Positions 1,631 through 38,482 of a DNA stretch of 40,697 nt are shown here, piece after piece. The notes under the pieces were generated by a model. The model searched no databases, was not told where the DNA came from, and saw only the letters and a program-made list of their open reading frames with translations. The DNA comes from Hyphochytrium catenoides (Eukaryota > Protista > Hyphochytriomycota). The DNA is taken from positions 1 to 40,697 of the forward strand of contig FLMG01004424.1 of the NCBI GenBank assembly GCA_900088475.1. The letters run 5' to 3'. The position numbers were made by a program, and so were the translations under genes. Positions within the stretch are counted from its first letter, which is position 1; each line of letters starts with the position of its first letter.

Positions 1631-4264
1631 CTAGGGTTCCACAGATCTCAGCGATGCAGCCACTTTCTCACAGTTGTAACTTTTGCCTTTCTGGCTGTCT
1701 GCCCTGTAAAATACTGCCGGCTGACCCAGTGGAGCAGGGTATGACCGCCATTTTCCTTCCTCATAATAAGGAGAAGAGGAAGAGATTTGCTCATTCGACC
1801 AAACATGCCTCCACTGCCCGGTTGGTAGGTAAAAGCGCACATCTTGAACCCCTGGCGCCAAGACTGGTGCAACTAGTAGACAGGGCCCCACCATAAATTG
1901 ATTCTCAAGAGCTAAGACATTAGGGTCGTCTGGAAACTCCAGCACCATGTGACGCGTTAGAGGCCACCCTTTTTGCACTGCTTCCTCTATTAAAAGATCC
2001 CGATATGGGGCCAGCTGCTGGTGCCACTTAGCCGCTCGAGCAAAGGCCTCTATTGTCTCCGGCGTAGAATAGACTTGATGGTTGTCGTCTGGAAGAGTTC
2101 CGACATGGGTCCGGAAAATGACGTCAGAGAATGCTGACAGCTCGCACCATCGAAGAAGCAACTCCTGGGTCCGCACGTACGCAATAAAGGGCTTTTTGAA
2201 GGAGGTATAGCCACCAATGTCGCTGTGAGCCAAAGCGTATCCCGAGAGACCACTTGAGATAGCTGAACGTAAAGCGCTCGTAAGTCCATCATACTCATCC
2301 CAGACTACGACATGATCCCCGTGCCATAACAAGCGAGTCAAGCCAGGAGTACGAGTCCAACCAGATCTAGAGAAGGGTATGATGTCATCATACCCTGCCG
2401 TAGCTCGTCGGTTAAGCTCCTGCCATTGCTCAGGGTAGACATTGTGGTTGTTGACTGGATCGCGACCGCTATCATTGTGAATGAGAGCATCTAGTGGTAG
2501 AGATTCCGCAAAGTCAGCCATCCAGCCATAAACTTCGGGTTCACAAACGTCAGCCCCTTGCTTACAGTGACAAACCTTCATCATGTTGCAACGAATGACA
2601 TCCACATACCAATCAACCGCTTCCGGGTTGGAAAGGTCTATCATAGCGTACGAGAAAGTCTTGGAGCCACACTCCTGAAGGTAAGGCTCTCCAGTAGCTC
2701 GATTCTTGACAAAATATCCCTTTGCCCGCCCGATCTCGTAAAGGTTCTCCCTAGCGTTGGGTTTCAGGGCAGCCACCGAGTTTGAGACATAGGGATTGAT
2801 GTAAGTCATTATTCTTACATTCTCCTCCTTCAGCTCTGCCACCAGGCCCTCCCACTGTGGGTAGTGGTCATAGTCGTTCTCCCAGTTCCACCAGAGTCTA
2901 CTGCCCAACCGGTCAAACCGTAGTCCTGGCCAATCCTGCAACCAAAAGCCCGAGATTGGCACACCTCCTGCTTTGAGCTTCTGATAGACCTTTCTCACGG
3001 CTTTCGTTCCGCCCGTGAAGCCAATGACTGCGCCATTGTGATAGATCCACTTAGCTAGGCGCGGAGCTCGCCCTGTGTGCAGCGTTAGCTCTTCGATAGC
3101 AGCGAGCGGCTCCTTAACAGCTCCGATGTGGCCCACCAGCTCAGGGACATAGGGATTCTTGGCGTTACCGCCCTCTCGAAGTAAGGTCAATTCCATGGTG
3201 ATTGAATCTTCAAGATTCCACATAATGTATTCTGAGTTGTCCAGGGCTAACATTCTGCCTCTACTGGTGACCAGGGCTGGCATAGGAGCATAAGATGTGA
3301 ACCACGTGCCCGAAGCTGTGAATTGTGTGACAAGGTTGACGAGCCAAGAGAGGGGCTGTGTTCCTCTCCCTGCGCCCTGCTCAATCACGAAGGTTGGGAA
3401 GGCTTTCCCTCGCATGTTAACATGGGTCGCCTGCTCACCAAAGCCATAAATCGCCTCAGCAATGCCTTCCTTATCCTCGAAGTCAAGAGAGAGGGAAATT
3501 CTATCCACCACCTCCTTTGCATCCTGCTGTTCGTTGTCAACAAGCTTGGGTCTGAGTCCAAACTGTAGTTGATTCCCAGACACAGGAGATACAGAGAGCG
3601 TGAAAATATATGGCACTGTGCGTCGCAGTCTCCCTCCAGTGACATCGCCGTGTATTTCTATGGAAGCACTGTCTTCAGAGACGATGACTTCCTTTATGCT
3701 CTGAACAGCAGAGAGGTCACAGCTATGCCGATATTGCTGTCTCCACCAGGAGGGTCTAAATAAGGAATTGACAAGCCGAATAAGCTTCTGGAGGCCATAG
3801 AGGACGAGATTTTGGTCTTGAAGGAGCCATAGCCCCGGGTAGCAAGGGTCCCTGAACTCATAGATCCCGCCCTCGAAAGCGTCGACAGCTAGGTGAACGC
3901 GGCCGACTTGGACCCATGGTCTATTATTGCTCGGTGTATGAAAGACCGTTGTTCCGCTAAGCGATGAAGAAACATGGACATAATTAGTTTCTGGTACAAT
4001 CCGTACTTCATATAGCCCGCTAAGGGAAAGGTTCTGGGAAGGCAAGCCGACAGGATCAACTACCTGCTCTACTATGGGCTTGGTATTGGAGTGATAGCCA
4101 TCCAGATAGATGACGGCCCACGCCAAGAGGGTAAAGGCTGGGATGGAGAGTATGAAAGGTACCGACAAGTGCAAATCTGGCGAGAAATGGAGAGGAGCAG
4201 CCAGCCATCTACTGAGGGCCTGGGTGGCGCTCGAGCGCCTGTGACTGCTGGGAGAGAACTTCAT
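1631..4264 (-). CDS. yihQ: Glycoside hydrolase family 31, YihQ/sulfoquinovosidase-like, with N-terminal membrane anchor; intronless, 877 aa
   Basis: Uninterrupted ATG-to-TAG ORF. GH31 nucleophile motif WMADFAE, acid/base motif LWHGD, HSDIGGY, FRTH and C-terminal QFMVGPCLLVAPV...FYLPTGQWRHVW. The YihQ-type block GFTGGT...GFWLQDWPG...GSRLWWNW is present. Hydrophobic segment LSVPFILSIPAFTLLAWAVIYL near the N-terminus. The symbol denotes family resemblance; orthology was not tested. Confidence 0.9.
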   Translation of the reverse strand: MKFSPSSHRRSSATQALSRWLAAPLHFSPDLHLSVPFILSIPAFTLLAWAVIYLDGYHSNTKPIVEQVVDPVGLPSQNLSLSGLYEVRIVPETNYVHVSSSLSGTTVFHTPSNNRPWVQVGRVHLAVDAFEGGIYEFRDPCYPGLWLLQDQNLVLYGLQKLIRLVNSLFRPSWWRQQYRHSCDLSAVQSIKEVIVSEDSASIEIHGDVTGGRLRRTVPYIFTLSVSPVSGNQLQFGLRPKLVDNEQQDAKEVVDRISLSLDFEDKEGIAEAIYGFGEQATHVNMRGKAFPTFVIEQGAGRGTQPLSWLVNLVTQFTASGTWFTSYAPMPALVTSRGRMLALDNSEYIMWNLEDSITMELTLLREGGNAKNPYVPELVGHIGAVKEPLAAIEELTLHTGRAPRLAKWIYHNGAVIGFTGGTKAVRKVYQKLKAGGVPISGFWLQDWPGLRFDRLGSRLWWNWENDYDHYPQWEGLVAELKEENVRIMTYINPYVSNSVAALKPNARENLYEIGRAKGYFVKNRATGEPYLQECGSKTFSYAMIDLSNPEAVDWYVDVIRCNMMKVCHCKQGADVCEPEVYGWMADFAESLPLDALIHNDSGRDPVNNHNVYPEQWQELNRRATAGYDDIIPFSRSGWTRTPGLTRLLWHGDHVVVWDEYDGLTSALRSAISSGLSGYALAHSDIGGYTSFKKPFIAYVRTQELLLRWCELSAFSDVIFRTHVGTLPDDNHQVYSTPETIEAFARAAKWHQQLAPYRDLLIEEAVQKGWPLTRHMVLEFPDDPNVLALENQFMVGPCLLVAPVLAPGVQDVRFYLPTGQWRHVWSNEQISSSSPYYEEGKWRSYPAPLGQPAVFYRADSQKGKSYNCEKVAASLRSVEP

Positions 4265-4839
4265 TTCGACTAACTAACCAAAATGATGGCCCTGTCCTAG
4301 CAGCAGGCCGCGGTTCCGCCCCTGCCTAAGGGAGAGGTGAAGCCTGACTTATGTGCCCTAAGTTGCGGTGAAGATTAGCCAAGCCCAGGTCATTGGCCTA
4401 ACGGTAGGGCTTGATTTGCTCAGATAAAGCCGGCATTGCTACTACTATGGTCACTTTCTTCTATTGTCAGGACCGCTTATTATCAGCAGAGCGCTAGACC
4501 TGATACAGAGACTCCCTGAAGGTTCCTAGTTCTCTCGGTCTTGATGACTTGTGGGGAGATGTACTTCAACAGCTCCGAAGCATCGGCAGGCTGAGCTCTA
4601 CATGTCCATCACAAGACACTCATCAGCCCGATGTCAACATGCACCCTCCACACACAAACGCCCAATGTTCAGGTGAAGGATCCCCGCTAACGTGCAGCAT
4701 ACCTTCGGAAAACACGCAATCACAACGACAAATCTCCGTTGTTGGAGCGCTTGAGCCATCTGTGGTGACCTCACCGTCATCGTCTACTAACTAGAGACTA
4801 GAGCTGCATATACCTTCCTTCCCTGCCCTTCCCGCCGGG

Positions 4840-6200: not shown

Positions 6201-7985
6201 TGGAGGAGGAGGAGTGAGGAAGCGATCAGAAGATGATGATGGATTAGCTGGGGGATGGGCCAGGAGGAGATCTGGGGAGGAGGCTAAAGGCAAAAATAGC
6301 GTAAACACTGCGTAAAACGTCAGTACCCTCCCTCTTGTGTGGCAGCGGTGGGTGTAACGAAAAGTATGTGCGATGCCGAAATGCCGAAAGTATCACCTCA
6401 CCTTTGTGAACAAATATTTCAGGAGGATGGGAACCGTTGTTATCGGGCATCCTCACGTAGGGCTCTTTAATTTAGGGACAGGCCCCACGTTTGGCTCGGT
6501 TTCTAGGATTACATTTCGGTACCGAGCAAGGTTTCCCAGTGTCATGTGAAACGGTTACAGTCCCAGTAGGAGGAGGAGGAGGAGGAGGAGGGAAGGCGTG
6601 GCGGTTGGGAGCTGGGGGAGGAAGAAGCTTGTAGCAGCAAGGAAGCCTCGGACATTGAGGCAGTCGACAGACGGAGGCAAACTTCTTCACCACTAAGAAG
6701 ACACTTGCTGCTGCTCTTCTCCGACCTCGGCTTCCCCGCTCTGTCTTATTAGCAGTGGTGGGGCAAACAATGCTTGTTTGATGACATAAGGAGAGAGAGG
6801 GTAGTAGTAGGGAGAGGGAGGATGTAAAACCAGCACGGGAAGGTGGTAGGAGGAGCTAGAGTCTCATAAGAGTGGGTCACCATTGAATACATAGTCATAA
6901 TCTATTCAGGGTCCTCTTCGTGCATCGTGCAGGGATGGGCGGTGAAGGAGAAGGAGAGGCGACGAAGTCGACCAAGGCCCTCCCATAGTGAGCGCCCTTC
7001 AAGAGGCATTGGATCGAAATAGATAAGGAGCGTGGAGGAGAGAGCAAAGGTATATGCAGCCTGATACTCAGCTCGTATAATGGCAACGGCCAGCCCATCA
7101 TCGCACGCATCTGTCTGCTGGATGCCTCCCCCGCCTCGCTTTTAACTCTGCTTATACTGCACAACTGAAGACCACACACCCGCAATCAGCAGGATTTGAA
7201 AAACCTGGTCGCTGTCCATAAGAGCTGAACGGGTGGTGGGTTCTCCTCCTGCTGGCGGAAGTATGGTCACCCTCATAGAGGGAGAAGCACCTAGGACTTT
7301 TAAGAGACCAGACAAGATCTATATATACATTTCCTGGTCAATGGGTGGCACATGTTGCGCTTGAATGAGTCAGGGACGTGACATAGACTTTGTCAGGCAG
7401 CATCGCCACATATAGTACAGGAATCGCGACCGGGACCAGGCGATAGTGGCATCATCAGCCACCAAGACGATCCTTGCACTTGCTCTATGCCATTTCTTCG
7501 GAAATAGCTTCACGATAGGAAGATTGCACAGTGGTTCAACGCATGTTGTGGCTTGGATATCTTCCGACTATCTAGTGGATATATTAGGGAAAGGTGCGAG
7601 CTGATAGGACCATTATTACCGCGATCGTTGGCAGTTCGGGGGAAACCCTCAGGACCGGGGAAACCCGTCAGGGCCTTCCTTCTTCTTTTAAATCTTCTTC
7701 TTCTTTCACGGAGTTGCCTGAGATTGGCACTACTACTCTTAGTCCGCATAACAACAACCGGGAAGAGCTGAAGGAGAGCCCAAAGGCAACATATTCTACT
7801 TGCGTTGTCCGTCTTAGAGAGGTCAGGACCCCAGTACTTCGACGCTTGTGTTTCTCTCTTACCTCGGGGCATGCAAGCGCTGCTATCTACCTTCTTCATC
7901 AAGAAGAAATAGAGACTACCGACGGCGGAGAGGCGTCTCTCAGTTTGCCACTCCTGACCCACCAGCTACATTACCTCCGCTCATT

Positions 7986-10289
7986 ATGATGGCCGCTGGC
8001 GGTCGTCACCACCAACGAAGGGTTCTTACCTCAGTCTTCCAGGATGAGATATTTCTTTCAGGCGAAGAGAAGACAACGCGCACGATGCTCCACGTACTAT
8101 TGGGCACCAAGCTCTCCGCCTACTTCAAGCGCTTCTCGGCCATCTGTTTGCCCTTTCCAATCGTCGCACCGCTCTTTCTCATCTGCTCGACTGCAGCTCT
8201 TCTGAACCCGCTCTTCACCCAGCTTCTACCACCCACTCCAGGCACGCTATGGTTCACCGAAGACTTTCTTCCATTGTTCAGTTTATTGGTTGCTGTGCTA
8301 ATAAACTTGATTGGCTTTGGCGACACTAATGCCAGGACCTATAGGCTCATGTGGAGCAACTTTTACACTTGGATGTCGATGGCGGAAGTAGTTGGCTTTG
8401 GTCTGGGCTACGCTGCCCTGCTTCAATGGACAAGGAAGGCCATTCTTCTCTGTTTAGCAGTCCTGGTGCTGTTGAACTATTGCCTGGCATACGATGGGAT
8501 GCCGTCAGGTGCGCGGAAGAGGCTCCGATGGATGATCCTTTGGATTTGCCTGTTGTCTTTGATGCTAGGTTGTATCATCTACCTCCAATGGGTTCCTGGA
8601 ATGGTGGAGAGGAAGGTGAAGTTGCTGTCCATTAAGGCTTTGACAACACGGAACGATGGCACGCCAGAAGGTACAGCCGAGTGCTCTTCCTCGACAACAT
8701 GGGGCAGCCATTCAGCGAACCTTGACAACGAGGTTGACGAGGAGGGAGCCCCATGGTCGCCAAGTTTCTCCTTGAGAGAGTTCACTCTCAATCGATGTGT
8801 AGGCTTCGCTGTACTCACGCTGAGGATTCTTTTCGATGCCTTTACTGATCCTCAGGCCTGCACACTTACAATGTCTGCTCTCCAGAATGAGACAATTATT
8901 TTGTATCAGAAAGGAGATGGTAATGAGCCCGGCGATGTGAAAAACCAGAACAGTCTCGTTTTATCGTGCTGTGAGACGGCTAAACTACCGCCGGACAATC
9001 AGAAGAGTGGATCAGTGATGCCAGAGAGATGCGGGTTAACAATGGAGGTTAGGCCCTTGTGTCGTCAATACTTCTCGCCGCCGATAGAACAGAGATCTGG
9101 TCCTCTTAACACCCTTCAAGAGCTCACTACCAATGAGACTGGAGGAACAATAGAAGCATCGACGGAGGCCCCATCAACTTCGTCACAGACATGTCTGACG
9201 GCGGCAGTACCACCAAGACTTAGCAGCCATAGCAAAGAGCTAACGAAGTCAAGGTTAGCAGTCAACGGTTGGCGTTGGAAGCTTGTCAGTCAGCCAAAGA
9301 AGCTGCTATTAGAGGATGACGAGTCCCGGCATACTCTGCTTCATAAGCTGATTGGGAACTCCTGGGCGGACTGGTACCTCCGTCTAGTAAGGGGCACTCC
9401 TCGGAGAGAAAGATCAATGCTCTGTCTCTCTGTCGCTTGCATTGTTGTCTACTTCGTCGTAGGCGCACCATATGTCTACATCGAAGGGTCGCGGCCAGCT
9501 TTAACCCCTGTCCTCTATCTCAGCGCTGCATTTCTAGTGGAGTTCGCCCTCTCAATGTCCAACTATGCCCTGGCAAAGAGAGTTTTCCATACCTTCGAAT
9601 TCTGGCTGGTGATGACCAAGATGATCTTTTTCCTTGGCTCTGTTGCTTACGCCTTTTGCTGGGAATATAATGGCCCTTGCTTCTGCTATCTCCTGGCTGC
9701 GGTGTTTAACACTCTTATCGACACCTTCCCGGACAAGCTCAGAGGCCTTTCTCGTCTGCTCATGCTTTTTTCTTTTTCTCTTTCTAGTCTTGCGCTCTTC
9801 GCACTGTACTATAGAAATGGTTCCGGCATGACCTGCGCAGCGATGCGAGTTACACTCACTGGTCGCTCTATAACGGCGGAAGCGGCGTGTGCCCTAAGGA
9901 AGGAGTTAGAGGAAGCATCCCAGCGACAAGGGATGTCTTTCTCTGACGCGCTTTTTGGTGCATTGGGGCAGCAAACTCTCTCGGTTCTTGACATTGGTCT
10001 AAGCAGTGGGGTCGGCTACGTTGCCCTTTGCGTAAAGCAGCTTTACGTGGCCCTTCGCTACCCTAAGCACTGTGTGCTGCTGAAAGGGAGGATCAGAGTG
10101 GAGCGAAACTCTGCGACAGAAGAAGTCAAGACGACAGCAAACGAGAGAGACTCTATACTCAGAAACGCATCGTCACTTCCCTCCTCCTGTGTGGCGCCCG
10201 CCCATGACCACCAAGATAACTCCAAGTGGATAGAGAAAGATGAGAAAGAGGGAGAAGAATTCAAAGATAGGAGAGATCAAAGAGGGTGA
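7986..10289 (+). CDS. Uncharacterised polytopic membrane protein, two ~6-TM units (paralogue A)
   Basis: The open frame runs from 7848 (GTG); the first ATG is at 7986. Two hydrophobic units are separated by a Ser/Thr-rich linker. Each has T-[ML]-L-x-x-L-[LI]-G, N..(F..W), D..P...R and P..C.L motifs shared with the ORFs at 12181 and 22818. The 5' end is uncertain. Confidence 0.8.
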   Translation: MMAAGGRHHQRRVLTSVFQDEIFLSGEEKTTRTMLHVLLGTKLSAYFKRFSAICLPFPIVAPLFLICSTAALLNPLFTQLLPPTPGTLWFTEDFLPLFSLLVAVLINLIGFGDTNARTYRLMWSNFYTWMSMAEVVGFGLGYAALLQWTRKAILLCLAVLVLLNYCLAYDGMPSGARKRLRWMILWICLLSLMLGCIIYLQWVPGMVERKVKLLSIKALTTRNDGTPEGTAECSSSTTWGSHSANLDNEVDEEGAPWSPSFSLREFTLNRCVGFAVLTLRILFDAFTDPQACTLTMSALQNETIILYQKGDGNEPGDVKNQNSLVLSCCETAKLPPDNQKSGSVMPERCGLTMEVRPLCRQYFSPPIEQRSGPLNTLQELTTNETGGTIEASTEAPSTSSQTCLTAAVPPRLSSHSKELTKSRLAVNGWRWKLVSQPKKLLLEDDESRHTLLHKLIGNSWADWYLRLVRGTPRRERSMLCLSVACIVVYFVVGAPYVYIEGSRPALTPVLYLSAAFLVEFALSMSNYALAKRVFHTFEFWLVMTKMIFFLGSVAYAFCWEYNGPCFCYLLAAVFNTLIDTFPDKLRGLSRLLMLFSFSLSSLALFALYYRNGSGMTCAAMRVTLTGRSITAEAACALRKELEEASQRQGMSFSDALFGALGQQTLSVLDIGLSSGVGYVALCVKQLYVALRYPKHCVLLKGRIRVERNSATEEVKTTANERDSILRNASSLPSSCVAPAHDHQDNSKWIEKDEKEGEEFKDRRDQRG

Positions 10290-11404: not shown

Positions 11405-12180
11405 CAACAAAGAGCAAGAAGATCTTGAGTTGCAATGGTAGCTTTCGTAGCAGGAGCTTTCACCTCTTTCGAGCCCGAGGCGGGAGTCATAGGAGGAGCT
11501 GGGAGAAGTGCCGATCGGAAGACGCGTTACCATGTCCCCGAAGGAGAGACAGCGGAGGATGCAGAGCAAAGGGGAGGAAGAGAGCTGTTGATGAGAAGAA
11601 GAGGATTGGGACGGAGCGCGGGACCACCTATTTCCTCGTTCCTCCTCCTCCTCCGCTTCGTCTGTCAGAGCTTCTAACAGTAACAAGTAAGGAGAGCATG
11701 CTTTTGGCGGTGCCTTGCTCGTAAAAGAAGGAGAGTGTGGCTAAATGGAGAAGGAAAGGGTCTTCTTAAGGGTCCCGTAGTCCCTCTTCTCCCACTCCTC
11801 GGCCGACGAGTCTCCTTCAGCTTCCTCTCTCGCTCTACGTCAGCAACCCTTCCCGTTGTCATTTGACCTGTCCAGCCCGTCTGCCACCCGGTTTAGCTCG
11901 GACGTGCTCCTAGGCTCTACACAGAGGCTAGAGGAGTTCCCACCGGAAGGAAGTCAGGAAGAAGGCAAAGAGGCCAAGAGACTGGAGCCCTAACACTTGA
12001 GCTACAACGTAAGACAGTCGGCCACCACTTGCAAACAGTTACCATGAAGGTGGCAGCTTGTAGAAGAAGAGAGAAAGAGACGAGCAATGTCCCAGGAAGT
12101 CCAGTGCTGTCAACTACGAAGTGAGAACCTCCTGGGGAGAATAGTAGAATCTAGCTCTTTCTCCTCCGGTGGAGTCAACC

Positions 12181-14577
12181 ATGGTCTCCGTGGACGTGAA
12201 CGCTTCGTCGTCACCTTCACAGGGCTCATATTTCCCAACAGCCTCTCTCTCTCTCTTTTCCCCGCAAGCAACTAGCCAGGAGAGAGAACAGCGAAGTGCA
12301 TCGAGGACGTCGGCAGCTACTGCTTCTTCTCCCAAAAGCACCCATCTGCAACTAGCAGCTGTTGATGTGAGAGAGATCGTGGAGAAGAAAAGAGAAAAGA
12401 AATTATGGGCTAACACGGAACCCAATAGCATTAATAAGCAAGAAGGGACGAAGCAGTCAAAGACTAAGGCCTTAGTGGCCACTTGCGCCTGGCAGGAGCT
12501 GTCCGAGGAAGAGAGTCGGACGACGGTGCTAGTCTGGCTCTTCGGCCAGCGCTTCACTGACAAATTCTTCCGATGGACACGCCTCTTTCCTTTCCTGAGC
12601 CCTCTCTCGTTGGCCGGCTTTTTCTTCACCGCATACTTTCTGCTTCTTTCTTCTGCCCCAGAGGAGACCAAGATAATGGTCTACTGGGCGGTAGCGTTCC
12701 CATGTCTTCTCTCTATTGCTCTGCATAACTTCGCGGTCATGAACCTGCTCATGGTCCGTCAACTGTTACGGATGTTCGACACGTGGTGGTTCCTTATAGA
12801 GACAGCTCTTCTATCCCTTACTCTGCCTTTCCTCCTCTGTCTCAAGGCGACAGGGATCCTTTATAGCATCAATCTCTTCTTCGGAGTTATTCTAGGCTTC
12901 CTCTCTTACGACAGTCTTTCCCTAAATGTGAGGACAAGCGTGAGAAGGTCGTTATTCCTGTCTTCTGTCTTCTTCTTCTCTCAATTTGCCATCATCTACT
13001 TCCGTCTACCTAGTGAACTCTGCTTCTATCGCTTGGAGCTAGCAGGAGGCGCGGGAGGAGGACCTTGGTTCAAGCCCGAGTGCTCGGACGAAACACTTAA
13101 TGAAAGACCTGAATGGAGCTTGTCTCTCTTTCAGTTCAGCAGCACTCGGCTGTATACCATCAGCATCTTGGCTTTCAAGCTCACCTACTTTGCCCATCGG
13201 CACCCGCAGGATTGCGTGCTAATACGCTCACATGTTCGTTTAGTGGAGGCGGCAGTCGCGGCAAATTCTGCTGCGCAGCTGAATAGAGCGTCTCATGGGG
13301 CTATACTACGGCTGCTGCCTGAGACTAGTATCAAGACCATCACCAAGCCAAGACCCAAGACATTAGTGTGTCCATCAAGAGTACTCTCAGATACTAGCAC
13401 CTCTAACAAGGCGGTTGTTGTCGATACTACTGCCACCTCCATCGTCGCTGCTGCGGAGGATAATAGGTCCACGAAAGGAAGTGCAGTAGGAGAGAACGGA
13501 CAAAGGAAGAAGAAGAAGAAAGCTCTCGTGGCCGGCAATCCAATCCATCAGCTAACCGTAGATGATAGCAACACCACTTTGATGATGTCTCTCTTTGGAT
13601 CGTCGTTTAGTCAGCGCTGGTTTCAAAAGAAGAGAAGCCTCGTCTGGCAGAGCTCCCTGGCCGTTGTGGGCTACTTCTCTGTTATCTTCGCCATTCCCTT
13701 GGGGCTAGATGATTGGACGATGACCGTGCTTACGTTAGGTGTCATGGCCCCTAGCACTCTGTATCTGATGCTCTACTTCTCAGGGCTGATGAATGTTTAC
13801 ATTGTCCGCCGATGTCTCAAGATCTTTGACACCCGATGGATACTTTTAGAAGCTACGGTCTTTGTGTTTACTATGCCACTTGTCTTCTGCCAACGGGGTC
13901 ACTGGACATTCGGTGTAGGCGCCAATGGGCTCATAGGCATTTGCTTTGGCTATCTCTTCTATGATAGCTTCCCCATTGGGGTTAGAAGATCGATGCGCGT
14001 AGGCTTGGCAGGAACAGCTGTGGCATATGTTATCCTGTTAGTTCTTTTTTACTCCAGAACTCTTCCTGGTACTTGCTTCTACCGTGTCAGTTGGCATGGA
14101 AAGGATCACTTCTTACTAGACAAAGGACTTCCACGGCAGGCGGCTGGTCAGGGGGAAGAAGATGGGTCAGCAGCTATTGTCCACTGCATCTTCCTCTTAC
14201 GCAGACAATTCTTCTCAACTTCTTTCACGATGACCCTGTCCGTCTTTGAGCTATGTTGCAGTCGGTTCTCAACGCTCACCATAATGGTATCAAAGATTGT
14301 CGCCACGGCTCTAAAACACCCTGAGGACTGCGTCCTCCTAAAGTCGCGTCTACGATTAGTAGAGACGGCAATAATAGAGTCATCCACGCAACAGGCTGCA
14401 GAAGGGCCCCCACTAGAAGAAGATCCTGGCAATAGCAGTGCTAGTGACGTCGCAGACAAGGCAACGTGTAGATTCTCATTAGGAGAAGGAGACAAGAAAG
14501 GGACATCAGTCGCAGTTCACCCTGCTGTTAGTGCTTCAATGGCAGTTAGTGCTTTCGATTCTCTGTCGGGCTCCTGA
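12181..14577 (+). CDS. Uncharacterised polytopic membrane protein, two ~6-TM units (paralogue B)
   Basis: Intronless ~800-aa ORF; first ATG at 12181 with an in-frame stop shortly upstream. The internal duplication is visible: KALVA..., MN...FDT.W...E, YDS, CFYR, HP.DCVL..S..RLVE each occur twice. Confidence 0.85.
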   Translation: MVSVDVNASSSPSQGSYFPTASLSLFSPQATSQEREQRSASRTSAATASSPKSTHLQLAAVDVREIVEKKREKKLWANTEPNSINKQEGTKQSKTKALVATCAWQELSEEESRTTVLVWLFGQRFTDKFFRWTRLFPFLSPLSLAGFFFTAYFLLLSSAPEETKIMVYWAVAFPCLLSIALHNFAVMNLLMVRQLLRMFDTWWFLIETALLSLTLPFLLCLKATGILYSINLFFGVILGFLSYDSLSLNVRTSVRRSLFLSSVFFFSQFAIIYFRLPSELCFYRLELAGGAGGGPWFKPECSDETLNERPEWSLSLFQFSSTRLYTISILAFKLTYFAHRHPQDCVLIRSHVRLVEAAVAANSAAQLNRASHGAILRLLPETSIKTITKPRPKTLVCPSRVLSDTSTSNKAVVVDTTATSIVAAAEDNRSTKGSAVGENGQRKKKKKALVAGNPIHQLTVDDSNTTLMMSLFGSSFSQRWFQKKRSLVWQSSLAVVGYFSVIFAIPLGLDDWTMTVLTLGVMAPSTLYLMLYFSGLMNVYIVRRCLKIFDTRWILLEATVFVFTMPLVFCQRGHWTFGVGANGLIGICFGYLFYDSFPIGVRRSMRVGLAGTAVAYVILLVLFYSRTLPGTCFYRVSWHGKDHFLLDKGLPRQAAGQGEEDGSAAIVHCIFLLRRQFFSTSFTMTLSVFELCCSRFSTLTIMVSKIVATALKHPEDCVLLKSRLRLVETAIIESSTQQAAEGPPLEEDPGNSSASDVADKATCRFSLGEGDKKGTSVAVHPAVSASMAVSAFDSLSGS

Positions 14578-15098: not shown

Positions 15099-18000
15099 TT
15101 AGTAGTCCACTTCGAGGCTTCCCTCGCCTCTTTCCTGCTGCTGATCATCTTCATCTTCCTGTGTCGAATCTTCGTCGTCGTCGTCATCGTTTTGATCCTC
15201 ATAATCTGAAAATGACAGCGATGACAATGAGGACTCTTCTTCTTCTTCGTCTTCCTCAACAGAGAACCATCGCTCCCTATGTCTTAGCCATTTCTGTCTC
15301 TCACCCATTCTGATAGCAGCCTGGACTTCCTGCCATTCGTTGACTGTTAAGCTGGCGTAGTAGTTCTCTTCCTCCGAAAAGCACCAGCGCTCAAAATGGA
15401 GATATCTGTTGTGCCGTAGCGCTTCTTTAAGGGAAATTGGGGAAGGCAGGAAGCTCATAATCCTCAGGAGAAGCTCCACAGAGAGATGTAGAGGGGCAGC
15501 CACCTCTTCTAGGGTTCTCATGATAAGGAAAGAAGAGATCTCGAACGGCTGGTTGGGGATCTCTCTCGTGGAGATAATTCGGTGCTGAGGGCATACTAGA
15601 AGGAACGAGAGAGATCTCAACACGACTGCTGATTCTTCCTGACAGTCATCAGGAAGGAAAGAGAGAGACAGCATCTTGTGCTGGACGTTATTGTTGAAGA
15701 CTACGAGGTTTCCTTCATGAACGGGCACAAGACCCACTTGTTGGCTCCCTACAAAACCGTCACCTTCGTAGTACGGGAACAATAAGTCCACACAAAGCTT
15801 CTCGTCTTCATCTTGCTCTTCTTCCTCCCCCTGCGGAGAGAGTTCCAAATGCTCTTCGACAGGTTCCACCTGCCTGAAGGCTAGCCCTCCAGTAGTGAGG
15901 GAAGGGTCAACACGATAGAAGCAAACCCCCACAGCAAGAATATCCTCATGGGGTGCGCCTTCTCTCTTCCACTCTTCCTCAGGTATTTCTTCCCCAGACG
16001 TAGCAGAATGTTCCGCCGCTCGAACGATTACCTGTAGCTCACGCTGGCGAAGAGAGAAGCCACAGCAGCGCTCGAACAAAGGGAGTAGAAGAGAAAAGGC
16101 TTGAGAAATGGCACCATACATTCCTCCATAGAGCTCCTTTGGAAGGGAAACGATGTCTGACCTAATCTCGGTTTCGCCCTTGTCTGACACCCAAAACATG
16201 GAAGGAAGTAGCTGATAGGGAGAGTGCGGCTTCTTCCATCTCAAGCTCTCCGACGCTCTCCAAAGCTCATGAGCCTCTGCAAAGTCCCTGGGATAGCTAA
16301 GACCATCTATGTAGGGATAACGGAACGGATCTACGACTGTGTAAGCGTTGGTATCCCTTCCACTAGTTTCCACGTGATTCGCCCTTTCCTGGTCAATGAA
16401 CAGCTCTCGCAGCCCAGGGCCATGAGAGGCGAGCACAGCGTCCATTTCTCTATTTAGCTTCCCTACTAGGGCCCGCGGAACTATGTTGTCTGCCCAGAGA
16501 ATTCTAGCACGGTTACTGACGATAAGCTTCTCCTCATATAAGTGCCGCGAGAAGTGCATTTGTCCCATGTCTTGACCTCTAAACTTCAGAATATGTGGTT
16601 GACACTGGCGTTGGCTCTCTTTGTTATCAATTTCCTGCCGGAGACCCAGAAGTTTACACTCCATTTCTTTGTCCTGTAGCTCGCCTACTTGATGACGGAT
16701 TAATACGTCCACTGGCCCTTCAATGGACACACCGGCATGCAAGGCTTGTGGATAGGCTAGCCGCACTCTGCGGGCTTGCTCACTACTCACACCTACGGCT
16801 GACCGATAGATAGAAACATATGAGCGCAAAGCCAATGCACAGACCCAAGAGAGAATGTCCAGCGGACCAAATGATAACCCAAAATAACGAGACCTCTTGA
16901 CTGTTAGTGGGCAACGCTCAACGATCCTCATTCCCCTGTGTTTGGCACTTTAAGTTCCATCTGATGCTTACCACTTCCATCAAGCACTTCCTTTGTAGGA
17001 TATATTATCTGTCCGTTCCTAGTAAAAAAAGGCGATCTTGACACCGGATCATAGCCAGCACCGATCACGTCGCCCACGGAAAAGGTAAGTGATTTTAAGC
17101 TCTCATTGCTGGCGCATTCATTGTTGGGGAAGATCCTCCCCCACAATGAGGCACGAATGCCGGCATCCCTGCGACCATGAAGAAAAATGAGTCTTCGCAA
17201 TGAACTAGCCGGGCTTCAGTCATTGCTACTTCTACAGAATGTCAGCTCTGTCTGTAACAAGAGTACCAGATAGGACTTGAAGAGGAACACTAGGAAAGGG
17301 GTGGAAAGGAGCGGGTATTTTGGTACGAAGAGACGGTCAACTCTCCACACGTATAACGTGCTGCCGAGCTCTTGCTGACCTTGAATAACCTATGCTGAAG
17401 CGATTGGCTGGTCGCCTATACCGGTAGGTGAAGATTCCTTCACAAGGAGCCGATGAACCAAAATGGATGTCCTCCGGGTGGTCTTTCTCAGCAAAACCAA
17501 GAGATACACTCCAGCGTCTCTCTTCCTGGTCACCTTCGCTTGTCTGAACCTTCAGAATCACGCACTCAAGGTAGTATAAACTTTCAGAGTTCTCCTCACA
17601 GCACAGGGGCTTTTCAGAAAGGAGGGACACAATCTTGGATGGATTCGGGCAGCTGCTACGTGTTGCAAGAATCTGCCCATTATTAAAGTCACGATAACGG
17701 AGAGAAGGCAGCCTTTGCGCTCCTTGAAAAGCGTCATTCTCGGTGATCTTGAGAGCGTTCTCTTCGCCTTCGCCACTGGGTAGTACATAGTAACGCACCC
17801 AATTGGAACGGTCGTAATAAGTCAGTGGCGAGGTTGGAAGCTCCTTTATCACCTTGAGTGCCTGGGTCTGGGCGGCCAAAAGAGTCTCACCATCCAAGCC
17901 TACAGGAGACTCTGAGGAGAGAAATAGTGTGGCAATTGGAGGTAAGGATGGAGGATCAATAGAGTTACGTAGAAGATGTTAATCGCCATTGTCATAAAAA

Positions 18001-20354
18001 TCTCTTCTATGAGCTAGCACCCCCATCCTTTACAAAGTCAAGCTATTCATTTTTAGTCCCCCTTGCCTGACACAGTGCAGCTGGCGGAAAGAATACTAAA
18101 GCTTACCTGAGGAACGGCTTGGGCGACCGCCACCCCTAATCCTCTTCGTCGCAAGAGCCTGCCCAGCACCCGCACAAGACCGTAATGCTCTTTGCGGTGT
18201 CAGGTCTGTTTCACCGCAGCGGAAAGTAGACACCAGAACATAGGCATGCATAGGAGAGATCCCGCTGATCCCCACAGCGTGTAGGTAGAGCATCGCCTGT
18301 GCTGCTTTGGAGGAGGTGACAGCCTGGTGCCAATCCTCTTCTTTCCTAACTCTTTTTAATAAGGCATCTATTCTCTCTCTCTCGCTCTTTGGAGGTGTAT
18401 ATCCTATCAACGGAATTTCATCCTCCAAAAAGGTCCATAAGTCCTCCTCATCCTCCTCGCTGTCGTCTATCTGCTCTTTGTTTCCTGCTGTCTCATCCTC
18501 TTCGCTTATTGTCCCCTCATCCATGCTTTCTTCCCCAGACTCTTGGCCAATGTGACCCGCAAGACCCAGGATCAACCCTAACTGCTGCCCACAGAACTTT
18601 AGTGCTGCCGCCTTGAGCCAGTGAAGAAGTTTCAACCGAGGCTTCGACGACGAATCATGTGTAATGTCAATGGAAGGATTGTATTCGTTGGATAGCGTTG
18701 CATATAAGGCGAGAAGTACGTTCGAAGACCCCACGGCCTTTAGGCTCCAAAGTAGCTCTAGCACAGCTTCCAGGACTTGCCGAGTCATCATAGGAAGCGT
18801 GTCGTGAAGAACCTCTCCGAGGAACTCAGGTGGGAACGAAGCACCATGCTGGCAGAGTTTGAAAACCAAAGTGAGTGCAGATCTCGCGTCTACCTCCCAG
18901 GCTGCTCCGTCGAGCCCGGCTATATCATAAAAGACAGCTCTCCGCTGTAGGAGCCCATGTCCAATGAAAGAGGAAAGGGACGACATGGCCTCAGGTTCCT
19001 TGGCCATCTGGGAGGTGAAAAGAGGGTGGTGAACTAAGCTAAGGCAGGCGCTGAGCACAAGCTGGTTAGATGTTGGATAAAACCCGTCAAACCAGTGGGA
19101 GTCCCATCGTTGCACGTACTCCAGCATTGGTTGCAGCTGTTGCACCAGATGGGCAACGAAATCCTTCCGCTCTAGAAGGTGACGCATTCTCCAAGCGTTC
19201 TTACCTACGGCAATATAGTGCAGAAAGCTCACAAGAGACCAACCCCTTTCTGGTTTACCTACTCCGTCTTCATCAATGTCCGTCACCGGTTCGGTTGTCT
19301 GGGTGCCAGCAGATCGGTAAAGTGCGTCCAAGAGAGGCTCTTCTAGCACCGGCGAGTATGGAACACTAGCTCGGGCGAGGATGCGCGTTAGATTTCGCTG
19401 TAAACAAAGGTTCCAGTCGTCAGAAGGCTCCTCGTCTATAAACAGGTCTAGATGCCTGCTAAAGAGGTCAGCAAGTAGTTGTCGCTCCTTTCTTCCTTCA
19501 AGGATGGGGTGCACAAGATTGTGAATGACGGGTAGCGATGAGCAAGTATCAGACACTTCCCCAGCGAGTGCGTTTGGTGAGGCGGACGGGAAAGACTGAA
19601 GCGAGTCGACAAGGAAACATCGATGAGAGACAAGCGAGAGTAGGCGCTCGTGGATAGTTGCCACTTCTGCTACTAGTCCCCAAAGAAATTGCAGCAGCTC
19701 ATGCTTGTCCTCCACTCCTACAGAAGGGAAGATCGGAGTCGAATGCGAACGGTCTTGCAGTCGCGGGGAGTATTCATCAGAGGGAGCAGTAAACGTTGCA
19801 AGATTGGCGGCTATGGCCCTCACTGCCGCGTGGGCTAGCTCTTGAGTCTTGGTCTGTACGACTCTCAACCTATCGGTCTGCTTGACTAGACTGGTTATTT
19901 GCTGTGACAGCGTCTTATCGGTCTTCGTTTCCGTAGTTGGTAATGATGGCGTAGAAAGCCTGGGTGGTAGCTCTGCGCAGGTAGAGGGCGTCTCAGGCTG
20001 ATAGACATGGTCCAACAGATACTTTCCGCTGGAAAGCACTCTAGGTCCAAGTCTGAAAGCAAGGAGAGTGCTACCGTATCTCATTGTCTCAAGTCGCTCG
20101 GCTTCAATTGTTCCTCTCACCAGCTTTGAAGGTCCACATTGTGGATGGAGTTTGAGCAGTAGATCTTTACACAGATCCACGAGCCGGGAGAAAAATATAG
20201 CGCCTCCAGCAGGCGAGAGAAGGGAGGACGTACCCAATGTCGTGAGATGAGGAAGGTAGAACTCTAGGGGCAGCGCGTTCTGATCGGGACTTGTCGTGGA
20301 GGGTCGCAGCATCTTATCTAGTGTGAGCTCCACGCAGGGACAGAGGGGTAACAT
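15099..20354 (-). CDS. Multi-exon protein: helical N-terminal region + SPRY-like domain + DUF4246-like (2OG-Fe(II) oxygenase-like) domain + acidic tail
   Basis: Four ORFs join in frame through GT-AG introns 17900-18106, 17169-17379 and 16799-16971. Exons 18107-20354, 17380-17899, 16972-17168 and 15099-16798 total 4665 nt (1554 aa). SPRY-like motifs: YYLECVIL, SVSLGF, SIGYSRDAG, FSVGDVIGAGYD...FFTRNG. DUF4246-like motifs: YQLLPS, LQVIVRAAE, EG..HEDILAVGVCFY, EGNLVVFNNNVQH, FLLVCP..RIIST..IP.QP. The gene probably extends 5' into the 20314-21642 ORF. Confidence 0.75.
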
Positions 20355-21642
20355 TTGACGTAGGCTCTCCCTCCTTGCTTGCCTCCTCTTCCTCTTCCTC
20401 GGAGATGTAATATAGGTCGTGATGCACCTCTAAGATCCATGAAAGTCCCTTCTCTCTGTTCTCGACACCAGTAATTAGATGGCCAAGGACTTCACGCATA
20501 ACCTTCCGCCATGCCTCAGAACCTTCATGTTCAAAGTAGCGACGGAGAAAGGGGCTAAAGGCGCTGATCAGTCTCCAGGCAGTAGCGTGGACGCCTAGGT
20601 CTCGTCTCACAAACCAATGTTGAGGGACGCTGGGCATAGAGTCATCCCAGTAAGTTTGGTGTGGACTTAGCTTCTTTAAACTCTGAAGGCGGAGCCACAC
20701 CTCAAACAGGCCCTCCTCTGATTGCCAGTCTTTATCAGGCTGGCGCCGTGAAGACGTAAATCTGAAGAATGGCGCTTTGGTTAAAGGAAGGTGACGCTCG
20801 TCTTCCCAAGGTTCAGTCTCTTCTCTCGAGCCCTTTGCCTCTTGGTGATAGGCCTTGCGTGCCCGCAACAAGTCCAAGCTCGTGACAATCAGGTTAGCAT
20901 TGGCCTCACTCTTGTCAGACTCGTCCTTCAGCTTCACTTCTTCCAGAAACTGGAACAAGGAGGCAAAGGCCAACCCAACATCTCGCAGAGTTCGCAAGTC
21001 CACCAGAGGATTGTCTGGATGACTTGTCTCCTCAGCATTAGAGGTGAAGTCAGCGAGGGAGAAAAGCTGCGCCATACTTTGAAGCAATGGCCTGGCGCCC
21101 AGGAAAGCAAATAGCAGCTTCACTTTCTGCTCTTCCTCGTCATGACTGCTTTCATCTGCAGCTCTCTTCCCTTTTCCCTTCTCTGGTCTATTGATAGTGG
21201 ACCCCCCCTGGCGCTCGTTTTCCTTCCCTGTCTCCATGGCGCATATCGATCTTCCCGTGTCTGAGGAGAAGAGTCTGGACTCAAAAGGTCGGATCAGTTG
21301 TAAGTAAGAGCAGATGTCCGCTAGAAGATCATTGACTTCAGCTTTGTATGACCCTCGCTCTCTCTCCTTATTCTCTACCAACAGGACAGCCCGGTTTGCC
21401 ACCTCTTGCGCTTTGGCTGTGTATTCATCTAGGCGGTCAAAAGCTCGGGTCCAGGATTCGCCGCTCGGTGCCCATCTCTTACTTGGCCACACATTCAGGC
21501 CGCTCGCAGTGACGCCGTGCCAAGAGCTGGTCTCTGTCGAGAGATCAGATGCTATTGTCGTCCGTGTCACGAGCTCAACCTTCATCATCCCTTCCATCCC
21601 ATCTTCTTCTTCTCCCTCTGACCTGTGAATGTTGACGTCCAT
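20314..21642 (-). CDS. Hypothetical 442-aa ORF, probably the first exon of the SPRY/DUF4246 gene
   Basis: Long ORF with ATG at 21642 on the same strand. It overlaps the next ORF by 41 nt in a different frame. Candidate splice sites that would join the two exist (see findings). No recognisable domain. Confidence 0.6.
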   Translation of the reverse strand: MDVNIHRSEGEEEDGMEGMMKVELVTRTTIASDLSTETSSWHGVTASGLNVWPSKRWAPSGESWTRAFDRLDEYTAKAQEVANRAVLLVENKERERGSYKAEVNDLLADICSYLQLIRPFESRLFSSDTGRSICAMETGKENERQGGSTINRPEKGKGKRAADESSHDEEEQKVKLLFAFLGARPLLQSMAQLFSLADFTSNAEETSHPDNPLVDLRTLRDVGLAFASLFQFLEEVKLKDESDKSEANANLIVTSLDLLRARKAYHQEAKGSREETEPWEDERHLPLTKAPFFRFTSSRRQPDKDWQSEEGLFEVWLRLQSLKKLSPHQTYWDDSMPSVPQHWFVRRDLGVHATAWRLISAFSPFLRRYFEHEGSEAWRKVMREVLGHLITGVENREKGLSWILEVHHDLYYISEEEEEEASKEGEPTSNVTPLSLRGAHTR

Positions 21643-22817: not shown

Positions 22818-24995
22818 ATGAGGACCAACGGTACCGGGGACAACGTAAAAGACGACGCTCAACGGAAGACCGACAAAGCTATTATTCACATGAGGAATAG
22901 CATCTCCACCGCAGATGATGCCTATCTAAGGAAAAGCGACGGACGTACGACGAGAGAGGAGGACGCCGCTGGTGCCGGCAGCGGTAATGTCGTGATGCGG
23001 CCGAAGAAGACGAAGGCCTTGGTAGCCGTCACTAGAGCGATAGAGCTGTCAGAAGAAGAAAGCACAGTCACGCTGATGTCCAGATTTCTAGGAGCGAACT
23101 TCTTTCAAGCCTGGGTGCGGCACCGACAGCTCCTGACACGAATTAACCTGCTAGGAACCGCCCTGCACTTCGTCACAGGCTATTTTCTACTTCTCTCCGA
23201 CGCGAAGGGGACAACAAAACTCCTTGTCTATTGGGCTGTGGCCTTCCCCTGCGTGGTCTCCCTCGCGTTTGAGGTTGGCTCTATCATGAACCTTACGCTT
23301 ATCCGCCAGTGTCTGTCTATGTTTGACACGTGGTGGTTTTTGACCGAAACTCTTCTCCTGACCGTCACTCTACCTTTCGCACTCTGTCTAGAGAGCTGGG
23401 CTATTTTTTATAGCGCAAACCTCTTCTTTGGAGTCTGCGCCGCCTTTCTATTCTATGACAGCCTCCCGCTTGCAGCGCGGAAGAATGTTCGCATTCCGCT
23501 GCTCATTAGTTCCTTCTTCTTTCTCTCACAGTTCAGCATTATTTACGCAGAACTGTCACCAAATATGTGCTACTACCGCTTCGATGCTTCTGATGGCCTA
23601 GTCTTGGGAGCTGCTACTTGTCCAGGCAGCAGGCTAAGGGCCCAAAGAAAGCCCTGGAGCATCCAGCTCTTTGACTTCTGCATCAACCGCTTCATCACCC
23701 TGACCATCCTCACCTTCAAGTTTACCTTCTTTGCCTTCAAAAACCCTGAGGACTGCGTGTTGATAAGGTCAAGAGTTAGATTAGTTGAGACACTAGTATT
23801 AGACGAGAAAACTCCTCAAGAACAAGAGGCTAGCGCCCAGACAGCAGCAGCACCAGGACCTGGGGCATCCCGTGAGCGAAAGGGCATAAGGAGGATCAGA
23901 CCCGCAGCAGAAGAAGCAGGTGTAGGAGCAGGGACAGCAACGAACGACGAAAGAGACTCAGTTGTGCCAGAGGCTCCGATGAAAGTCGTCTCAATTGACA
24001 GCAGCAGCAGAGACCAAGCGGCGCCTTCTTTAGCACCGATGCAGGGAAGTTCCCTTGAAGAGAAGCTGGTTGGCGGCCCATCTGGACACCATGGACAACA
24101 AAAACAGACCAAGAGAGGAAGCCAAGCAACTACTCCTAACAATCCTCTTAAAGGCGACAACGCGCATGCAACCATAATAGACAAAGCGGCTGAACATCTG
24201 CACCACCCCGGAGGAGAAACCTCAAAGGTAGAAGTAGCAAACGGAGTATCAAGAACAGTAGTAGCTCGAGCAGAGAAGAAAAAGACCATCGTAGCAACGA
24301 CTCAACACCGCCAACTGACAGTGGAAGAAAGCCAGACGANNNNNNTGACGCTTCTCCTGCCGAGTACGTTGTACCTTTGTCTGCATAACTCCTCAATGAT
24401 GAACCGCTTCATCGTGAAGGAGTGCCTGACAATGTTTGACACGCGCTGGGTACTGTTGGAGGCAACACTCTTCTCCGCATCCCTGCCTATTGTCTTCTGT
24501 CAGCGAGGCCACTGGACAATCCTCTCTAGTTCTTGCACTCTCCTAGGCATATGTGCTGGTTATCTCTTCTATGATAGTTTGCCCCTCGCCGCAAGAAAGG
24601 CATTCCGCTTTTCCCTGACCATCTCGGCATTCTTTTACATCTACATTCTGACCACGCTGTACTCCGGAACCCTACGGAATATGTGCTACTACCGCTTCCG
24701 GCTGGATGAGACAGGTCATATCACTGCCACACGAGGCATCCAAACTCCCGATAGTACTATCGAGAGCGGCTTTGAAGATCCTACTAGTTCTGATTCCTGC
24801 GGACAGGCAAGCGGCACAGGGAGTTCTTTCTCGCTAACTCTGTCCGTCTTTGATTTCAGCTTGAATCGTCTATCTACGCTGACCATTCTAACGTTGAAGA
24901 TCATGGTCTCTGCCCTTAAGCATCCGGCAGACTGCGTCCTAGTAAAGTCGCGCATGCGGCTAATCGAAGGCACTCCAATATTGCATTCCGTCTAG
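22818..24995 (+). CDS. Uncharacterised polytopic membrane protein, two ~6-TM units (paralogue C); spans an assembly gap
   Basis: Clearly homologous to paralogue B (e.g. VYWAVAFPC, MFDTWWFL.ET, LPFALCL, FCQRGHWT, ALKHP.DCVL.KSR.RL.E). It contains NNNNNN at 24340-24345. Confidence 0.85.
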   Translation: MRTNGTGDNVKDDAQRKTDKAIIHMRNSISTADDAYLRKSDGRTTREEDAAGAGSGNVVMRPKKTKALVAVTRAIELSEEESTVTLMSRFLGANFFQAWVRHRQLLTRINLLGTALHFVTGYFLLLSDAKGTTKLLVYWAVAFPCVVSLAFEVGSIMNLTLIRQCLSMFDTWWFLTETLLLTVTLPFALCLESWAIFYSANLFFGVCAAFLFYDSLPLAARKNVRIPLLISSFFFLSQFSIIYAELSPNMCYYRFDASDGLVLGAATCPGSRLRAQRKPWSIQLFDFCINRFITLTILTFKFTFFAFKNPEDCVLIRSRVRLVETLVLDEKTPQEQEASAQTAAAPGPGASRERKGIRRIRPAAEEAGVGAGTATNDERDSVVPEAPMKVVSIDSSSRDQAAPSLAPMQGSSLEEKLVGGPSGHHGQQKQTKRGSQATTPNNPLKGDNAHATIIDKAAEHLHHPGGETSKVEVANGVSRTVVARAEKKKTIVATTQHRQLTVEESQTXXXTLLLPSTLYLCLHNSSMMNRFIVKECLTMFDTRWVLLEATLFSASLPIVFCQRGHWTILSSSCTLLGICAGYLFYDSLPLAARKAFRFSLTISAFFYIYILTTLYSGTLRNMCYYRFRLDETGHITATRGIQTPDSTIESGFEDPTSSDSCGQASGTGSSFSLTLSVFDFSLNRLSTLTILTLKIMVSALKHPADCVLVKSRMRLIEGTPILHSV
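24340..24345. other. Assembly gap (6 N)
   Basis: Run of N inside paralogue C. Confidence 1.
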
Positions 24996-37874: not shown

Positions 37875-38339
37875 TCAATAGAGTACGCCAGCCTCAAGCA
37901 ACCGGTCCCATAGATTGCCTGTCGCATATGATACCGCCAGGGCATCGCATCCGCCGACATATTGACCACCAACAAACACAAAAACTCTATTTCTCTCTCC
38001 TCTCTCCCTGCCAGAGCTAAACCGCCCGACAAGCTCCATCTCCATCTTCTCGCCTGCCTCCGCGAGGTCGATAAGATGGAACCCTACATTGCACTGCTTG
38101 AATATTTGTGATGCTTTCTTCGTGTATGGACAAACCGATCGGCCAAAGATAATGACAGTTCTAGTCGCTAGTAGATAGTCCAATTCTCCTTTCTCGTCCG
38201 TCGAAGAGAGAGAGAATGATAATGTCTGACGGTGAGCGAGAGAGGTTGGAGAGTAGCCAAAGGATGCCTCAGCTTCAGGTGCCTGTGACGGCGTTGGCGG
38301 GAGACCAGGGGATGGTAGAGAGATGGAAAGCTCAGTCAT
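37875..38339 (-). CDS. Glutaredoxin-like protein (CPYT active site) with Ser/Pro-rich N-terminal extension
   Basis: VIIFGRSVCPYTKKA...VFVGGQYVGGCD...GNLWDRL matches the glutaredoxin fold pattern. The open frame starts at 38444 (TTG); the first ATG is at 38339. Confidence 0.8.
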   Translation of the reverse strand: MTELSISLPSPGLPPTPSQAPEAEASFGYSPTSLAHRQTLSFSLSSTDEKGELDYLLATRTVIIFGRSVCPYTKKASQIFKQCNVGFHLIDLAEAGEKMEMELVGRFSSGRERGERNRVFVFVGGQYVGGCDALAVSYATGNLWDRLLEAGVLY

Positions 38340-38482
38340 TCTCTGGTGAGAGAGTCTGGGGCTGCTTATAGTTTGCAAGTCAGCAAAGCGCAGATCACTT
38401 TCTGGCTCTCTTGTGAGGTTGAGTGCAGGATGCTGAATGATCAATGAGAGCTTGTCTGTTTCTTCTTGTGGGCCAATCTCCC

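Follow-up and report, generated by a model that had tools for sequence, protein, structure and literature searches.

The DNA analysed here is a 40,697-nucleotide stretch of Hyphochytrium catenoides (contig FLMG01004424.1), hereafter the window, and near its start it carries, on the reverse strand, an intron-free gene for a candidate sulfoquinovosidase (SQase) of glycoside hydrolase family 31 (GH31). The reading frame is unbroken from ATG to stop over 877 amino acids. An in-frame stop sits four codons above the ATG (M1), and the second methionine of the open reading frame (ORF) is M283, within the conserved fold. The features of the gene are collected in Table 1. Pfam matched the protein to PF01055 (GH31 barrel), to PF21365 (C-terminal) and, weakly, to PF13802 (N-terminal mutarotase-like). 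The three-part GH31 fold, an N-terminal beta-sandwich, a (beta/alpha)8 barrel and a C-terminal beta-sandwich, is present by these matches, by the predicted template modelling score (pTM) of 0.89 of an AlphaFold2 model and by the coverage of the SQase YihQ from E. coli. Compared with YihQ, the window protein has three additional parts: residues 1-84 (tail, anchor and stalk), an insert at about 143-179, which is helical and of low confidence in the model and interrupts the N-terminal beta-sandwich domain, and a four-Cys loop at 559-574.

Table 1. Features of the candidate sulfoquinovosidase gene in window coordinates (KD, Kyte-Doolittle hydropathy; pLDDT, predicted local distance difference test)
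Feature	Position	Strand	Basis or remark
Complete intron-free coding sequence, candidate sulfoquinovosidase	1631..4264	-	877 codons plus stop
Residues 1-33, N-terminal tail, net positive (4 K/R, 1 D/E), predicted cytosolic	4166..4264	-	Low pLDDT; orientation from the positive-inside rule
Residues 35-54, 20-residue hydrophobic segment, probable uncleaved signal anchor (type II)	4103..4162	-	KD 1.99; helix 34-57 in the model; equivalent in P0001 and most of the clade
Residues 77-270, GH31 N-terminal beta-sandwich	3455..4036	-	Secondary structure of the model, YihQ superposition, weak PF13802 match
Residues 417-461, block with T417, Q443, R456 and W459	2882..3016	-	Alignment to YihQ
Residues 420-754, catalytic (beta/alpha)8 barrel, PF01055	2003..3007	-	Pfam E 2e-35
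Residues 559-574, four-Cys insert (C559, C565, C567, C574) directly before the nucleophile	2543..2590	-	Sequence comparison
D584, catalytic nucleophile (=YihQ D405)	2513..2515	-	Alignment
D650, general acid/base (=YihQ D472)	2315..2317	-	Alignment
Y686 (=YihQ Y508), third sulfonate-site residue	2207..2209	-	Alignment
H720 (=YihQ H537), substrate-binding His	2105..2107	-	Alignment; role from literature
Residues 766-857, C-terminal beta-sandwich, PF21365	1694..1969	-	Pfam E 4e-19

The assignment to the SQases was supported at the level of sequence, profile and fold. The six best sequence matches in the PDB were characterised SQases only (BmSQase 8r56, E. coli YihQ 5aed, Agrobacterium 5ohs and E. 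rectale 6pnr; E 1e-88 to 1e-96), followed by the next family, YicI, at 1e-30; with E values of about 1e-95 a chance match is no concern. The protein also passed the NCBIfam equivalog model of YihQ, PRK10426, with 564.4 bits against a curated cut-off of 553, and stayed below the cut-offs of other GH31 models (158 versus 606 bits for the alpha-xylosidase model PRK10658, 98 versus 800 for MalA). The AlphaFold2 model, built from a 70-sequence alignment, reached a mean pLDDT of 88.7. In a Foldseek search with this model, 23 chains of four SQases ranked at the top with target-normalised template modelling (TM) scores of 0.90-0.94, and YicI then followed at 0.62-0.69. VIA-align superposed the model on the SQases with Z 47.7-48.9 and a root-mean-square deviation (rmsd) of 1.8-1.9 Å over 651-663 residues, versus Z 38.8 for the best non-SQase GH31 structure; in the superposition on YihQ, residues 85-875 of the model correspond to 8-678. 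All four crystallised SQases thus match better than any other GH31 structure. The preliminary description, which a placement outside the YihQ clade would have refuted, holds in this respect, as it does in the other checks proposed there that were run: by trees, PDB search and NCBIfam it lies within the YihQ/GH31_13 radiation, apart from other GH31 enzymes, and in the trees its ingroup, which includes EcYihQ, is separated from the GH31 outgroups with a support of 100. Other GH31 identities (YicI alpha-xylosidase, alpha-glucosidases) were ruled out by the profile cut-offs and the lower Z and TM values. A tblastn search against plasmids returned distant bacterial YihQ-like matches only, with 32-33% identity.

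Residue equivalences were taken from two multiple alignments and from a HMMER alignment in which E. coli YihQ (PDB 5aed) keeps its native numbering. All eight active-site residues of the window protein align with YihQ: besides the four equivalences in Table 1, these are T417=Q262, Q443=Q288, R456=R301 and W459=W304. The corresponding motifs, located by script, start at 416 (FTGGT), 441 (WLQDW), 454 (GSRLWWNW), 581 (WMADF), 647 (WHGDH) and 680 (HSDIGGY), and the codons of every fingerprint residue were confirmed in window coordinates. The spacings noted in the preliminary description for the Gln, Arg, Trp and Tyr of the sulfonate-site fingerprint and the catalytic Asp (26, 13, 3 and 36) recur exactly in the 877-residue ORF, and the residue 26 positions before the Gln is indeed Thr (T417). 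The Arg, Trp and Tyr and both catalytic Asp, like the remaining fingerprint residues, lie within conserved blocks with a pLDDT of at least 91.

The same description had read the Thr as a variant fingerprint, and this part did not stand. A census of 173 sequences gave QQQWY in 65, QQRWY in 29, EQRWY in 16 and TQRWY in 8, in addition to many rarer combinations. The first position is E/Q/T/S/Y/W in the eukaryotic clade described below (E 17, Q 8, T 6, W 1, S 1 and Y 1, n=34) and Q/E/M/H/T elsewhere, so that its behaviour is not that of a defining trait. Thr at this freely variable position arose independently at least six times on the tree and is neither unique nor diagnostic. This variability leaves (Q/E)-R-W-Y as the fingerprint that can be used, and the window protein carries it as Q443, R456, W459 and Y686; a 2025 paper likewise states the motif as Q/E-R-W-Y (PMC12780224). 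The characterised SQases show that the first two fingerprint positions can shift as a pair with R-W-Y kept. The commonest fingerprint of the eukaryote-type clade is EQRWY (17/34, e.g., P0038, P0039, P0058 and P0142), which matches neither of the described types (QQRWY and KERWY) and places an acidic residue beside the Gln.

Relatives were collected by searching 1.84 billion cluster representatives exhaustively and without a profile, and were counted at E <=1e-30. This yielded 842 relatives, the best 150 of which score 335-647 bits, none of them below the 322 bits obtained by E. coli YihQ in the PDB search. Two trees were built, one with FastTree (177 rows x 614 columns) and one with IQ-TREE (LG+G4, Shimodaira-Hasegawa-like approximate likelihood ratio test, SH-aLRT; 68 rows x 568 columns), both rooted with more distant GH31 proteins. 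In both, the window protein groups with the metagenome proteins P0001 and P0002 (support 100), and around these three extends a clade of about 30-34 representatives (support 95-98). P0001 and P0002, encoded on eukaryote-like metagenome contigs, are the sole close kin (45-52% identity, compared with 30-47% for the other eukaryotic clade members) and share with the window protein both the Thr and the four-Cys insert; the gene calls on the P0002 contig are fragmented as is typical of spliced eukaryotic genes. All named members of the clade are eukaryotic: Cymbomonas (two paralogues), Mesostigma, Amorphochlora, Vitrella, Monosiga brevicollis, Anaeramoeba flamelloides and MMETSP/EukProt transcripts. 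The clade therefore spans phototrophs (green, chlorarachniophyte and chromerid algae) as well as strict heterotrophs such as Monosiga and Anaeramoeba. Its active site is strongly conserved, with the Arg, the Trp, both Asp and the His present in 34/34 sequences, the Gln in 33/34 and the Tyr in 29/34 (Phe in the other five). Near the GH31 gene, the contigs of P0001 and P0039 each contain a small ORF whose leucine-rich repeat (LRR) matches are faint or weak (L001:551-1249 and L004:10303-10968), a proximity that is probably coincidence.

Outside the clade, the sulfonate-binding Arg is lost in 79 of 139 sequences, where Gln takes its place (QQQWY). These are the closest bacterial "YihQ-like" representatives (e.g., P0003-P0019), and the change between the Arg and the non-Arg state occurred at least 19 times on the tree. 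Long contigs from Binatia and Myxococcota (L005:10001-12280 and L006:10001-12181) provide Arg-less examples with no sulfoglycolysis neighbours, and several of the Arg-less bacterial proteins inspected carry signal or lipoprotein peptides. They may represent a large exported GH31 group of non-sulfonate specificity that is today lumped with the SQases. As about half of the closest bacterial "YihQ-like" clusters do not have the Arg, these should not be called sulfoquinovosidases; annotators should also be aware that of the five-letter fingerprint only (Q/E)-R-W-Y is left.

This plasticity bears on the substrate. An enzyme of the same fold and clade could act on another ligand, either a C6-anionic sugar (a glucuronide or a 6-sulfated or phosphorylated glucoside) or a neutral alpha-glucoside, with the RWY triad serving that ligand. 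We consider this unlikely. [quoted passage not shown] However, the invariance of Arg, Trp and His and the near invariance of Tyr over 34 clade members argue against it, all four crystallised enzymes with the RWY triad are SQases, and GH31_13, the recognised SQase subfamily, comprises enzymes reported to be inactive on p-nitrophenyl (pNP) glucoside, with no detectable activity. The putative substrate of the window protein is a sulfoquinovoside.

The preliminary description had also noted an N-terminal transmembrane segment that the E. coli enzyme lacks, and a hydrophobic segment that would serve as one is seen. V35-L54 is hydrophobic (mean KD 1.99 over 19 residues) and helical from 34 to 57 in the model; it is preceded by four K/R versus one D/E and followed by a slightly acidic stretch, and the alignment showed no comparable hydrophobic N-terminal segment in E. 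coli YihQ. Most clade members have a hydrophobic segment within about 30 residues of the N-terminus, and many have a pre-nucleophile insert with Cys and N-x-S/T sequons. In P0001 a short, Lys-rich N-terminus precedes a hydrophobic segment that starts within the first 20 residues. The window protein itself has 10 Cys, four of them in the pre-nucleophile insert, and sequons at N78 and N597; the four-Cys insert has no counterpart in bacterial SQases, and similar inserts occur in clade members beyond P0001 and P0002. Taken together, the hydrophobic segment, the positive-inside rule, the N-termini and Cys/sequon inserts of the clade and the N-terminus of P0001 support the prediction of a type II signal anchor that would stay uncleaved and hold the catalytic domains outside the cytosol.

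A true SQase at another location, brought there by a mitochondrial (stop-transfer) or other organellar signal, or kept soluble by a transcript that starts elsewhere, appears improbable. As might be expected of such a signal, S, R, A and L are frequent in residues 1-33, which contain only one acidic residue and, at 13-22, a short predicted helix, and the N-terminus is predicted from DNA. Against this, the n-region of P0001, short, Lys-rich and with its early hydrophobic segment, is typical of a signal anchor; most clade members have early hydrophobic segments and many have Cys/sequon inserts; a later start would fall on M283, inside the fold, and the in-frame stop lies only four codons above M1.

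The gene is intact beyond the assembly in which it was found. Logan contigs from two DNA runs of one organism span the whole ORF at the depth of its flanks and differ from the window at 26 positions inside it, 13 synonymous and 13 non-synonymous, with no stop, no indel and no change at a fingerprint residue. Since there are about three non-synonymous sites per synonymous site, the ratio of 13:13 indicates purifying selection on the ORF. The allelic or strain divergence across the locus is about 1%. Upstream of the gene, contigs of one run have a 1-base deletion at window position 4296, and in both runs a 38-base stretch at 4578-4617 is replaced by a single G. Contigs of 151-185 bases, 98.7-100% identical to the locus, were also found in two soil metagenomes of other studies and, given this near identity, the same or a very close organism lives in soil.

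That the gene is a silent relic or a foreign gene (a bacterial contaminant or a recent transfer) with no role in the organism is highly improbable. Its lack of introns, the failure to find the locus in RNA runs and the absence of the exact protein from the public protein collections searched would be compatible with it, but the 877-codon ORF is intact at flank depth in two further assemblies, the variants contain no stop or frameshift, the nearest relatives are eukaryotic and not bacterial, and neighbouring ORFs in the window are likewise long, intron-free and of similar guanine-plus-cytosine content. Bacterial contamination and recent transfer in particular were ruled out by the eukaryotic nearest relatives and the flank-depth coverage in other assemblies.

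The window holds few other recognisable genes. Apart from the SQase candidate, only a DUF4246 protein (610 aa, 15099-16931, reverse strand) and a glutaredoxin-like ORF (37875-38444, reverse strand) had a Pfam family. Tblastn of E. coli YihO/P/R/S/T/U/V and CsqR against the window matched only the yihQ homologue itself, and among ORFs of at least 110 aa neither Pfam nor tblastn detected a gene of the sulfo-EMP set, in agreement with the earlier statement that no sulfoglycolysis genes are adjacent. In a eukaryote, the genes of sulfoquinovose catabolism would not be expected to cluster. Three long, intron-free, Leu/Ser-rich ORFs on the forward strand (7848-10289, 12169-14577 and 22818-24995) are paralogous and have no Pfam family; the last two share 40% identity over 676 residues, with internal repeats, and the first is more distant. 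Two further long Pfam-negative ORFs on the reverse strand (18096-20354 and 20314-21642) overlap by 41 bases and could be parts of a single gene interrupted by a short intron or a frameshift.

In our interpretation, the gene is likely to encode a membrane-anchored retaining alpha-sulfoquinovosidase of GH31 subfamily 13 that acts outside the cytosol on plant or algal sulfolipid. The protein would be inserted co-translationally by its single N-terminal signal anchor, N-terminus in and catalytic domains out, and would work at the cell surface or in the endomembrane lumen on the sulfolipid of plant or algal food material. There, D584 would attack the anomeric carbon with D650 as acid/base, R456, W459 and Y686 would bind the C6 sulfonate, and O4 would be read by Q443 with support from T417. 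Sulfoquinovosyl glycerol (SQGro) or sulfoquinovosyl diacylglycerol (SQDG) would thereby be cleaved to sulfoquinovose and glycerol or diacylglycerol. A secretory or surface SQase for sulfolipid had been proposed in the preliminary description; placement, fold, residues, hydrophobic segment and the ORF's integrity in independent assemblies are shown and support that reading, while activity, substrate, topology, compartment and physiological role are what we infer.

Several points weigh against this interpretation. Membership in GH31_13 is by itself no guarantee of sulfoquinovose specificity, because the sulfonate Arg is so often lost outside the clade, and the enzymes of the eukaryotic clade are putative SQases throughout. 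The described partners at the first fingerprint position, Gln in QQRWY or Lys in KERWY, are replaced by T417 in the window protein, and the predicted geometry of the active-site residues in the model rests on alignment. The Ser/Arg-rich N-terminal tail could also be read as an organellar presequence. The locus was not found in any RNA run searched, so that expression is presumed and the 5' end is predicted from DNA, and the window contributes no sulfo-EMP gene. Finally, a January 2026 review lists all characterised degradation pathways as bacterial, with no sulfoquinovose pathway characterised in eukaryotes (PMC12890257).

The preliminary description had called this catabolism poorly characterised in eukaryotic microbes; eukaryotic SQase homologues of the secretory pathway are, however, no longer new ground. 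Since Speciale et al. 2016, GH31 homologues of YihQ have been on record for algae and animals, the Anaeramoeba flamelloides homologue KAJ6233665.1 is already named "sulfoquinovosidase" by NCBI, and a 2026 preprint covers animals. The gene is a further member of this known group. It adds a version with an N-terminal signal anchor in a probable non-photosynthetic soil protist, a delineated eukaryote-type clade with an invariant sulfonate site and proof that the fingerprint tolerates variation in its first letter; our literature search returned no paper linking sulfoquinovosidase with hyphochytrids, oomycetes, choanoflagellates or Anaeramoeba. If the host is plastid-less, the enzyme must act on foreign sulfolipid and not on the cell's own. 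Tentatively, and with more doubt than confidence, one can picture a plastid-less osmotrophic soil protist that mines the sulfolipid of pollen, algae or litter at its surface and passes the sulfoquinovose to bacteria or to a eukaryotic pathway, with secreted (E/Q/T)-Q-R-W-Y enzymes, an ancient clade found across eukaryotes, as a general digestive gateway to the sulfolipid pool. If true, gateway enzymes from choanoflagellates and anaerobic amoebae to algae would lie outside the bacteria-only picture of sulfoquinovose turnover. The gene and its clade are ready targets for a first biochemical test of a protist GH31 sulfoquinovosidase, and they allow one to ask whether heterotrophs among the eukaryotes tap the sulfolipid pool extracellularly.

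Among known systems, E. coli YihQ (PDB 5aed/5aee/5oht) shares the three-domain architecture of the window protein (Z 48.9, rmsd 1.8 Å over 662 residues, 33% identity) and its Q-R-W-Y, Asp/Asp and His residues with identical spacing. YihQ is cytoplasmic, with no hydrophobic N-terminus, and lies within the yih sulfo-EMP operon, whereas the window protein is extended at its N-terminus by about 84 residues, which include the anchor, and has the four-Cys insert, Thr for Gln262 and no sulfo-EMP neighbours. Agrobacterium SmoI/AtSQase (KERWY; 5ohs/7ofx), BmSQase (8r56) and the E. rectale SQase (6pnr) match equally well in structure (Z 47.7-48.7), with the Lys/Glu pair of AtSQase corresponding to Thr/Gln in the window protein; all three are bacterial, and for the bacterial SQases examined in the literature no transmembrane helix or signal peptide is known or predicted. 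The homologues of the eukaryotic clade are further counterparts: in them R, W, Asp/Asp and His are invariant, most have the N-terminal hydrophobic segment and many have Cys inserts. The NAD+-dependent SqgA of family GH188, functionally validated in eukaryotic algae, carries out the same reaction, the release of sulfoquinovose from SQGro, with an unrelated fold and mechanism, and SqgH, from a GH31 clade, has a different residue set (R302, T377, K412 and F513) that does not include the Q/E-RWY motif (PMC12780224); the window protein is neither of the two. The SQase homologues of Tridacna and other aquatic invertebrates keep Q288/R301/W304/Y508, have been proposed to digest dietary SQDG and carry signal peptides, glycosylphosphatidylinositol (GPI) anchors or C-terminal transmembrane helices (bioRxiv 10.64898/2026.02.11.705467, February 2026). 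Their cleavable signal peptide and C-terminal GPI anchor or transmembrane helix differ from the N-terminal signal anchor of the window protein, and the likeness is one of description that does not imply a shared clade, but the idea is the same, that of a heterotrophic eukaryote with a YihQ homologue in the secretory pathway.

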